A DNA stretch of 63,935 nt, counting the filler, from Reticulomyxa filosa (Eukaryota; Protista; Foraminifera): assembly GCA_000512085.1 (NCBI GenBank). It is 18 parts of 18 records of this genome, joined end to end, with 100 filler letters (N's around TTAATTAATTAA, not from the genome) between each part and the next. Parts side by side here need not be neighbours in the genome. Positions count along the whole stretch, not along the records: positions 10,366 to 20,222 come from ASPP01020499.1; 17 more parts are not named here. The stretch is one strand, 5' to 3'. The notes beneath the pieces were generated by a model that saw nothing but the letters and a program-made list of their open reading frames with translations, was not told the DNA's origin and did not search any database. This document shows, one piece after another, positions 10,366-18,244 of the stretch. Each line of letters starts with the position of its first letter. The stretch's first letter is position 1. Both the position numbers and the translations under genes were made by a program.

Positions 10366-10692
10366 ATTTGTAGATATTTTAACAAAAAAATTTTGATTAA
10401 ATGTTGTTTTTTCATTTAGAAACACAGTCATCTCTATAAGGTGGCATTTTAGGGTAAACTTTCTTTTTTTCCTACTGTATATTATATATATTGTTTGTGT
10501 TTTGTTATGTCTCTTTATTTTTAAAAAACTCTATACTTTTTTCTTTAGATCGCAAGATTGCCTCGTGAAAGAAATAATCTTTTTTTTCAATAAAAGACTT
10601 CAAATTTTTGATTAAATTTTGTTTTTTCATTGAGAAAATAGTCATCTTTATAAAGTGGGTTTTAGGTGCCAGCTTTCTTTTTTATTCTACTT
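10366..10692 (+). repeat. Dispersed AT-rich repeat, copies 2 and 3
   Basis: 10366-10461 and 10603-10692 align with 2239-2355. Confidence 0.85.
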
Positions 10693-11083
10693 TATACACA
10701 TGTATGTATATCTAAAGCATTACAAATTGTTCAAGATTTATAAACAGTTCATCATAATTTCAAGCTTAGTTTTTAAAATGCATGATTTTGTAACAACAAC
10801 AAAATAGACAGATTCCAAATAATCAGAAGACCTCCATGCTTGGGGATTCTGTCTTCATTGCGACTCCAAAGTTTTGTACTTTTTTTTTGTGTAATGTCAT
10901 TTGTGTATGCATTGCATATTCATACATTATTGTTCCAAAAAAACAGAAATCATTCGTTTTGGTTTCACCATGACTTCCAAGAGGTTCGCTCGGGTGTTTT
11001 CAGTGGAACGTTTCCCTCCAAAAAAAACTTATTTTCGTTGCAGGATCGAAAACCAAATATTAACAATTTCTTCTTTGAGTGAA

Positions 11084-13659
11084 ATGGCAACAAAAACAGA
11101 AAATGATGAAGGCGGCATAAAGGGTTTGCAAGAGCTGACCGCAATGCTGAGTTCTCACTTGCAACTAATGCAAGACCAAGACTCGTACGTTGAAAGTGCG
11201 ATTTCAATGTGTGAGAAAGCAACACAGACCCTGTTGAGAAAGGCAAAAGAGCGATCGTTAACGGATGAAAAAAAACTGCTCCAATCTTTGGGGGTCCTTC
11301 AATTGGGAACTTTTTGCGTGACACTGGTAACGTCTAAGTGTACGTATATACACGTTCAGAGAGAAAAAAGTATTTTTCTTTTTTTCACGGATACTTTTTG
11401 TACTTACATCTTTTTCGTTTTGCATCAAAAGTGTTGGTGGAGAGAATGTACGATGAAATGTACGAACCATTGCGTGAGGAGCAAAAGATGGCTCGCTCGT
11501 TGTACGCCCCAAAGTTAGAAGAATATGAAAAAAAGCCAAAGCCTGTAACCCAAGTTTTGAAAACACAAAAAAGCTAAAAATATAAAAAATTTAATGAAAA
11601 TAGCCGCTTGCATTTTAGCAATAATCCCTCGTCCATATGTAAACAAAATTTTTTAACATAAAATAAAACTAAAAAAGGGTGGTTCAATCGTGTCATTAAT
11701 GTTTTCCGCTCAAAACCTGTATTTGCCAGCATTTCAACAATTTGTCAACCAATTAAAAAAAAAATGCGACCAAAGTGGGATTACCGTGAAAAAAGTATCC
11801 AAAGTTGTTGTGAAAAATGTGGAAAGAACATTTTACAAAGTTTAAAATAACGAAGCATTCATAACACTTTTTTTTTTAGGTTATTCAAAGACAAACTATG
11901 TAATTATATACGTACATTTTTTTTGGTATTGCTTTGAAAAAAAAAAGACTTATTACGTTTATCGGGGTGATCATACACAACTGACCGACTTGTTACGATG
12001 TTCTTTTGTGTTTGATTCATTCGCGGATTTGTACAAAGCGTTTTCGGTATTGGAAGAGGTAGCCTCAAAAAATGATGACGTGAAAGGCATTCTGCGAGCC
12101 AAAGATAGATTTACGCCGGCAAATGTGCCGTTTGGCTATCGTGATTTACTTGTCAATCTGTATTGCCCAGGTAAATTGAAAAAAAAAGGGCATTGATAAG
12201 ACTAAACATATTTAACATGTTTATGACTACGTGCGACCAAAACACTTTTTTTAAAAAAAAAAATGTGTATGACAGGCACCGATTTAGTGTGCGAGGTGCA
12301 GTTCCATCACAATGTGTTTTACCAGTACAAGAAAGAAAGCCATTATGTATATAAAAGAGCAAGACTGTTCGAAAGTGGTGATAGAAACTTGGCTTATGAG
12401 TATGTCACAAAGCATATCAAAGACAAAGTTTCCAAAAATGAAAAATATGTTAAGTTGCACGCAAAACAAGAAAGGAAGAGGAAAAAACACCTATTTAAAT
12501 TTTTTGCAAGAATGTGAATAATTTGATTTTTCGTTTTTAAATAAAGAAACATGCATATGTACATATATGTTTGCCTTTGCATTTATATTGGGTGGGAATA
12601 TAGATTCCCCATGAGGAGGTAGACCACGACCACGCCGAAGAGAATGACGAAAAAGAGGAGGGGAAAGAAACGGAAGGACACACCAGGGAGGGCGAGAAGA
12701 AAGTAGATGAGAAGACGGTGGAGGAATTGGTGAAGGAGTGGATGCCTCCACAAGCGGCAAAGCAATGCTACGACGCACTTGCGGAACACGGATATGACAC
12801 ATTGGAGATGTTGGAATTGATCGCGAATACCGAAGAGGAGACATTGAACGAGCTGACGAAAACCATGGGATTTAAGGCCGGCCATGCCAAGTTGTTCGTG
12901 AAACGAAGGGACGAATATTTTCAATCCATTCGAAACAAAGAGAAGCAAAAGCAGCAAGAGAAAGAGCAGCTTAAGCAAAACTGGAACGACAAAGTCCAAA
13001 AAGACAAAGAAAGTGCAATGGCCGAGGAAGTTGCAAAAAAAACAAAAGAGTTCGATTCTGCGTATAATCGATTTTTAGTCGCAAGTGCCTTTATCACTGG
13101 ACAAACCGAAAAGACGTTCAAGTGTACTTGGTTTGGAAAGAATCCTTATCGATGGATCAACTCCGATTGGGAAGCGGCACCCCTTAGCACTCAAGGCAGT
13201 GGTCTGCCTGAACGCTTCGAATTGGAGGAGAAGACTTTGAAGGTGTTTTCTATTATCTGCCAATTCCGTGTCTCCAAATGCCGGGAAGGGGCACACCATT
13301 CGTCATTCCTTTCCTTTGAAAATTTTACCATGATCAAAGGTGACGATTTCTATGAATTCGATAGTGTCGACAACAAGTTTCACAACCTCGTCATCTCTGT
13401 CGATTTGAACAAAGGTAAATTTTGGTTTATGCTTGGCAGCAAAACTAAGTTCAAAGAATTGCAGATAACTGTTCCAGGAGGGGTTCTCAATCCTCATGTC
13501 TTGTACATTGGTTGTCACATCCATCGTGGCTTTAACAACGTCTACAAACGAATGGACGGAGAGATTGCAAACGTCAGGATTTACTCCATTCCGTTTGATA
13601 CTGCTTTGATGGAAACTGCCTTGGAATTTTACAAGGCTGTTAAACCACCAACACAATAA
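11084..13659 (+). CDS. Six-exon gene: RelA/SpoT-like nucleotidyltransferase domain + acidic linker + SAM domain + coiled coil + LamG/ConA-like domain (~663 aa)
   Basis: Exons 11084-11339, 11432-11553, 11678-11839, 11948-12170, 12276-12448 and 12604-13659. All introns are GT..AG and phase-compatible, giving a 1992-nt open frame (alternative upstream ATG at 10970). Motifs: VKNVERTFYK, LTDLLRCSFV, AKDRF...GYRDLLVN, CEVQFHH, HYVYK; SAM-like QCYDALAEHGYDTLEML...LNELTKTMGFKAGHAKLF; LamG-like DNKFHNLVIS...LYIG...MDGEIANVRIYS. Confidence 0.8.

Positions 13660-13920: not shown

Positions 13921-18244
<4,324 letters not shown>

Follow-up and report, generated by a model that had tools for sequence, protein, structure and literature searches.

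A spliced foraminiferan gene predicted to join a Tas1/Apk/EAS-type alarmone synthetase to SAM and LamG/ConA-like domains

Synthetase-only RSH enzymes transfer pyrophosphate from ATP to a 3′-OH and are toxic if unregulated. SAM domains drive the assembly of enzymes such as SARM1/TIR-1, which has the order ARM-SAM-TIR, and tankyrase, which has the order ANK-SAM-PARP. Tas1/Apk1 belongs to the Pseudomonas aeruginosa T6SS, Apk2 is a phage MuF protein, and SaEAS and VpEAS are exported alarmone synthetases. Apk1 and Apk2 make (p)ppApp, SaEAS makes both (p)ppApp and (p)ppGpp, and VpEAS and AaEAS make only (p)ppGpp (PMC12691689); the survey of Apk1 homologs in that paper does not mention eukaryotes. 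Alarmone synthesis by eukaryotes outside plastids is an old open question. According to one analysis, Mesh1 hydrolases are widespread, and cytosolic synthetases are known only as scattered, mostly untested sequences, with a precedent in the divRel SAS of Dictyostelium, ascomycetes and diatoms (PMC3153485). RelA_SpoT effector domains are also described in fungal NLRs (PMC4986451). Foraminifera are not mentioned in the accessible portions of either of these two papers, and a search for literature on ppGpp or RelA in foraminifera or Reticulomyxa, covering few subscription papers, returned nothing relevant.

The window analysed here is a stretch of 63,935 nucleotides of Reticulomyxa filosa DNA, composed of 18 parts of genome records joined with filler. 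In this window, contig ASPP01020499.1 carries a gene at 11084-13659 on the + strand (Table 1). Its six exons are phase-compatible and stop-free and comprise 663 codons plus a stop codon (1992 coding bases), while its five GT-AG introns are 92-155 nt long, with a GC content of 0.22-0.29 versus 0.34-0.44 in the exons. The NCBI annotation divides the gene into three models of 208, 148 and 413 aa, the last of which, RFI_23754, already connects exon 5 to exon 6.

Splice junctions were assessed by comparison with homologs and paralogs, and sequence searches used single exons or homolog proteins as queries. Proteins derived from Nonionella, Bolivina and Elphidium transcriptomes are collinear with exons 1-5, and several extend into the SAM domain. 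Contig L023 is intronless and, despite carrying frameshifts itself, aligns to all six exons without interruption at the five intron positions, at 49-75% identity across exons 1-5; in contig L003 the segment from exon 3 through SAM is one ORF. In the paralog RFI_04962, exons 4 and 5 and the start of SAM form a single unbroken genomic frame. A further paralog, RFI_03488, likewise places SAM after the synthetase and LamG after SAM, and its introns fall at corresponding positions. Together, these comparisons confirm the prediction of a single six-exon gene, including the junction 12448/12604 advanced in the preliminary description, for which L023, L003, RFI_04962 and the RFI_23754 model all speak. 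Of the six-exon, five-intron frame originally drawn, the exons, the phases and the collinearity with homologs hold, whereas the exon 1/2 junction probably differs, the homologs favouring donor 11327. The three separate genes of the NCBI annotation are ruled out by the collinear intronless homologs and the paralogs; bacterial contamination is ruled out by the introns at paralog-shared sites, the BEACH neighbour and the foraminiferan homologs. RFI_04962 (L004 3968-4570) lacks introns 4 and 5 and has one intron within SAM; its intron 1 lies one base off the best-fitting site of the window gene.

Table 1. Features of the gene in the window, all positions counted along the whole window.
Feature	Position	Strand	Remarks
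Exon 1	11084-11339	+	Start codon and N-terminal helical bundle; donor 11340 (preliminary description) versus 11327 (homologs)
Probable one-base phase slip	11300-11307	+	Lies in short runs of G and A; the match to homologs shifts to another frame
Exon 2	11432-11553	+	End of helical bundle and linker; 63% identity to L023
Exon 3	11678-11839	+	N-terminal part of synthetase
K-x3-R-x3-K donor-phosphate motif	11813-11839	+	Exon 3
Exon 4	11948-12170	+	Metal-binding Asp (11987), KDRF (12101), G-loop (12134)
DLLR, metal-binding Asp	11987-11998	+	Exon 4
KDRF	12101-12112	+	Exon 4
G-loop GYRD..N	12134-12157	+	Exon 4
Exon 5	12276-12448	+	Catalytic motif (12293), late His/Tyr/Arg motif (12341)
E-x-Q-x-H, catalytic	12293-12307	+	Exon 5
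H-x-x-Y-x3-R	12341-12364	+	Exon 5
Exon 6	12604-13659	+	Acidic linker, SAM, spacer, LamG/ConA-like domain, stop codon
Acidic linker	12604-12708	+	Exon 6; homologous segment low-confidence in P0029 model
SAM domain	12709-12924	+	Pfam SAM_1 E 0.01 (weak); family SAM profile E 7e-14; homolog Z 10.8
Charged spacer, probably coiled coil	12925-13059	+	Assigned from composition; absent from RFI_03488 model
LamG/ConA-like beta-sandwich and stop codon	13060-13659	+	Atlas features, TM, 45% identity to RFI_03488

The predicted product has the domain order helical bundle, RelA/SpoT synthetase, SAM, coiled coil and LamG/ConA. Its structure was approached through an AlphaFold model of residues 1-395 of a homolog, P0029, rather than of the window's own product. 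The P0029 model (pLDDT 93.5) comprises three long N-terminal helices (13-105), an RSH synthetase core and a SAM domain. The core resembles Rel (Z 13.6), SAS2 (Z 13.5), SaEAS (Z 11.7), CapRel (Z 10.4) and Tas1 (Z 9.9), and its top Foldseek and VIA matches are all RSH. The SAM domain has the five-helix SAM fold, with a Z of 10.8 and an rmsd of 1.7 Å to the SAM domain of EphA5, and its structural matches include SARM1 (Z 8.8) and tankyrase (Z 9.2). A single-sequence fold of another homolog, P0002, reached a pLDDT of 33. The last 200 residues of the window product match Laminin_G_3 clusters with Atlas feature scores of 0.96-0.97 and a structure TM of 0.60-0.72. The three folds assigned in the preliminary description were therefore retained: the RSH synthetase from the homolog model and profile matches to RSH, SAM from the family profile on exon 6 and the homolog structure, and LamG/ConA, a jelly-roll beta-sandwich, from Atlas features and TM, with no Pfam match to this tail.

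Pfam returned nothing significant on single exons of the window gene, its SAM matches being weak, and searches of PDB sequences with single exons were uninformative. Specifically, PF04607 (RelA_SpoT) matches none of these exons and matches 29 of 128 homologs weakly (best 1.7e-6). Exon-level Pfam found no HD, TGS, ACT or NTPase domain in 11084-13659, which agrees with the earlier claim that HD, TGS and ACT are missing, and no NACHT/NB-ARC domain in any exon. An export signal or secretion-system domain was found neither by Pfam nor by hydropathy. No exon contains a strongly hydrophobic segment; the highest 19-residue hydropathy, at the end of exon 1, is just 1.58, which argues against a clear signal peptide or membrane segment.

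The positions conserved across the family correspond to residues of FaRel2 with donor-phosphate, metal, G-loop and catalytic roles (PMC11782079). Among 65 close homologs, thirteen of these positions (K, R, K, D, R, K, G-Y, E, Q, H, H, Y and R) reach 90-100% conservation, and the window gene has every one. The family motifs read K-x3-R-x3-K, D-x-x-R-x-S, K-D-R-F, G-Y-R-D-x3-N and E-x-Q-x-H, whereas RelA, SpoT, Rel and RelQ have R-x-K-x3-S-x3-K, D-x-x-(A/G)-x-R, D-Y, Y-x-S-x-H and E-x-Q-x-R-T. Tas1 shares the first two family motifs, and the set also occurs in the bacterial and phage relatives described below, XopAD-type effectors included. A profile of six homologs matched three PDB sequences, all RSH; with a profile of 128 sequences, the first PDB match is Tas1 (E 5e-4), followed by B. 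subtilis Rel and SaEAS (E 0.003) and then by SAM domains. In a quick tree, a long branch (SH-aLRT 99) separates the ten Rel/SAS rows from the eukaryotic and Apk-like ones; being unrooted, based on 147 columns and built without Tas1, this tree names no donor. One Ralstonia row sits among the foraminiferan rows on a branch 3.35 long and was treated as an artefact.

These comparisons support the assignment of the predicted synthetase to the Tas1/Apk/EAS toxin branch and not to Rel/RelP/RelQ. The view that its motifs mirror those of RSH enzymes stands for the fold and for all catalytic residues, including the metal-binding Asp and the Glu, but the motif set is that of Tas1/Apk/EAS. A plastid or long RSH is ruled out by the motif comparison, the tree split and the missing HD, TGS and ACT domains, as the original synthetase-only classification had anticipated. 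Since members of the branch make (p)ppApp, (p)ppGpp or both, the assignment leaves the product unfixed.

Like Tas1, Apk and EAS proteins, the window protein has a synthetase-only RSH fold with K-x3-R-x3-K, Y-x-G-D, D-x-x-R, E-x-Q and a late H-x-x-Y-x3-R. Unlike them, it is encoded by a eukaryotic, spliced gene, lacks PAAR, MuF, LXG, a signal peptide and an adjacent immunity or hydrolase gene, and fuses the synthetase to a helical bundle, SAM and a variable domain. With long RSH (Rel/RelA/SpoT and plastid RSH1-4) and RelP/RelQ it shares the fold (Z 11-13.6, for the homolog), the metal Asp, Glu-x-Gln and the G-loop Tyr, but the family lacks R-x-K-x3-S, D-x-x-G-x-R, Y-x-S-x-H, E-x-Q-x-R-T and HD/TGS/ACT. 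The XopAD/RipS (SKWP) type III effectors, which have Rel-like domains, are linked to it by a weak NCBIfam XopAD match (E 3e-4) and by matches on a Ralstonia megaplasmid; the window protein differs in lacking SKWP repeats and in being made by a eukaryote rather than injected. Fungal RelA_SpoT NLRs and divRel, as described in the papers cited above, likewise place synthetase-only RSH domains in non-plastid eukaryotic proteins, receptor-like ones included, but the window protein has no NACHT/NB-ARC, and SAM is its assembly module. SARM1, tankyrase and cGAS/OAS offer a works-like analogy of sensor, SAM and nucleotide-consuming enzyme; the catalytic domain and product differ, and homology is confined to SAM.

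The window gene belongs to a large family. The profile search returned 2,046 clusters at E <= 0.001, of which 64 have E<1e-30; every named close match is foraminiferan, and the remainder are environmental contigs. R. filosa itself has at least five copies (the window gene and those on L001, L004, L024 and L025). UniRef labels the family proteins as uncharacterised or SAM-containing. Of the 35 close homologs whose tails are long enough, 30 have SAM after the synthetase; where a long tail extends beyond SAM, as it does in 14, the tails are mostly unrelated to one another. The conserved unit is helical-synthetase-SAM, with swappable partner domains. C-terminal partners include LamG, galectin, AbfB beta-trefoil, SPRY, TLDc, WW and DUF7495, N-terminal partners include Kelch, ubiquitin, Hint, WW, SPRY, C1/ZZ, kinesin with EF-hands and a choline-transporter domain, and 14-3-3 is also among the partners. 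The LamG tail occurs in just two R. filosa proteins, RFI_23754 and RFI_03488 (candidates of 227-723 aa), and in none of the proteins of the metagenome scan, ruling it out as a hallmark of the family. The closest transcript-like relative, L023 (949-2322), ends instead in a repeat-rich, probably beta-propeller tail with no Pfam match. P0048, P0049, P0052, P0058 and P0059 form a well-supported subclade; in the four members scanned, the synthetase lies behind a choline-transporter-like membrane domain. In P0028 (1-300), a ubiquitin-Hint-ubiquitin arrangement precedes the core and suggests autoprocessing.

Dozens of foraminiferan copies with differing partners suggest a sense-and-signal, possibly immune, protein family. 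Distant relatives include Guillardia proteins, diatom-rich clusters and proteins with TPR or LRR repeats. With some 2,000 clusters containing related domains, including cryptophyte, diatom-rich and TPR- or LRR-fused ones, the theme may be general in protists. No paper describing the architecture was found in a search that covered subscription literature thinly, in line with the initial statement that it was not known from described proteins; it is apparently a known catalytic class in an undescribed, lineage-expanded, receptor-like setting. Mostly missed by Pfam, the family has predicted active sites that are intact, members known from transcripts, a toxin ancestry and a modular make-up like that of receptors, and it supplies concrete candidates for assay.

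Bacterial and phage relatives were also recovered. Bacterial kin include a 3127-aa DUF4157/eCIS-type toxin that matches Tas1 at 2e-8, and XopAD. In Bordetella phage PHB04 (L012 571-2836), an unannotated Apk-type synthetase gene follows the portal gene and precedes a small gene and a gene for an alarmone hydrolase, which is the Apk2 layout (PMC10083569). Photobacterium DA100 (L010 5680-7512) has two tandem stand-alone Apk-type synthetase genes. A Candidatus Peribacteria protein (L007 1867-3739) ends in an Apk-type synthetase and is followed by a small gene, resembling a toxin-immunity pair. A tblastn search of phages with the foraminiferan domain, an examination of viral contigs for relatives and PADLOC gave nothing informative.

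We consider it somewhat probable, at roughly 55%, that the gene encodes a cytosolic (p)ppApp/(p)ppGpp synthetase of the Tas1/Apk/EAS branch that is switched on by ligand-driven clustering. The enzyme would move pyrophosphate from ATP to the 3′-OH of a purine nucleotide, yielding (p)ppApp and/or (p)ppGpp. Because it is toxin-derived and no hydrolase or immunity partner is present in the gene, it would have to be off at rest, and the conserved helical bundle probably holds it so. A glycan or protein ligand that binds the variable domain, here LamG, may then cluster the protein through SAM and turn synthesis on. The product could act as a second messenger or as an ATP/GTP drain, in a stress or defence response of a bacteria-eating cell.

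A more specific reading, which we hold only tentatively, is that a Tas1/Apk toxin has been domesticated into an expanded set of foraminiferan innate-immune receptors, in which lectin and protein-binding domains direct SAM assembly and cytosolic (p)ppApp/(p)ppGpp synthesis. If true, the nucleotide made would be an immune signal or a suicide metabolite, in parallel with the cGAS/OAS and TIR systems, and could supply the Mesh1-type hydrolases of eukaryotes with substrate. Arguing against an immune sensor, the ubiquitin, kinesin/EF-hand, choline-transporter, TLDc and 14-3-3 partners are not obvious pathogen sensors. The kinesin-EF-hand, choline-transporter, TLDc and 14-3-3 partners, together with C1/ZZ and WW, would sit more easily with a housekeeping or stress synthetase whose product would act like cAMP as a messenger in cytoskeletal, feeding or metabolic processes, the variable domains serving to localise the enzyme; a cAMP-like role was proposed for eukaryotic divRel (Atkinson 2011, PMC3153485). 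We think this unlikely, as the toxin-branch ancestry and the heavy shuffling of tails with several lectin-type folds are more typical of conflict systems.

That the copy in the window has recently become a pseudogene, or is cut short by a frameshift in exon 1, within a family that is otherwise functional is improbable. The case for a broken copy comes from a one-base slip against three independent comparisons. The family consensus at the end of exon 1 is F-L-x-x-x-x-L-x-E; a paralog and L023 match the first frame of the window gene to about 11300 and another frame after it, up to donor 11327, and the frame that ends at this donor fits acceptor 11431. With donor 11340 the frame is preserved, at the cost of four extra residues and of the conserved ones. 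Since the homologs switch frame here and fit donor 11327, a base seems to be missing from the window near 11300-11307. The explanation we prefer is a sequencing error in a run of bases, because a similar slip occurs in the paralog contig L001 of the same assembly; a genuine lesion, whether or not donor 11340 rescues it, may also account for it. Further against a pseudogene, the 1992 coding bases show no stop and no other lesion, and the in-phase donor 11340 would leave the frame open. A broken copy would be compatible with either family role. On L001, which lacks exons 1-3, the apparent one-base slip in RFI_03488 (1050-1140) lies in an A run after SAM, and the NCBI model bridges it by a short intron.

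Less probable again is modification of a macromolecule, either tRNA 3′-CCA, as by FaRel2/CapRel, or protein, in place of a free nucleotide. The fold is the same (CapRel Z 10.4, homolog model), and the toxSAS that modify tRNA rely on a helical extension at the N-terminus (PMC11782079), where the family has a conserved one; however, the motifs and profile favour Tas1 and SaEAS, which are nucleotide makers, and the tRNA modifiers retain the Rel-type R-x-K and D-x-x-G-x-R (PMC11782079), both of which the family lacks. Least credible is a role as an antibacterial weapon, in which prey or symbionts would be poisoned by release of the enzyme, or of what it makes, into food vacuoles or out into the extracellular network: the nearest characterised relatives are exported antibacterial enzymes (PMC12691689) and the same idea is raised for fungal NLR RelA_SpoT domains (PMC4986451), but the N-terminus has no signal-peptide-like hydrophobic stretch and the SAM, WW and ubiquitin partners are cytosolic.

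No antitoxin, immunity or hydrolase gene adjoins the synthetase gene; a BEACH/WD40 gene lies downstream, and no gene is called upstream on the contig. This BEACH-family gene (13921-18244, + strand), 260 bases downstream and covered by two NCBI models, has PH_BEACH, Beach and WD40 domains and appears to be of the ordinary neurobeachin type. Upstream of the synthetase gene, a 36-nt direct repeat (10387-10422 and 10602-10637) has copies that are 92% identical and 215 nt apart, and the similarity seems to extend further with small indels. A pyrimidine-rich, splice-acceptor-like AG (11030-11044) lies 40 bases 5′ of the start codon and points to a possible intron in the 5′ UTR.
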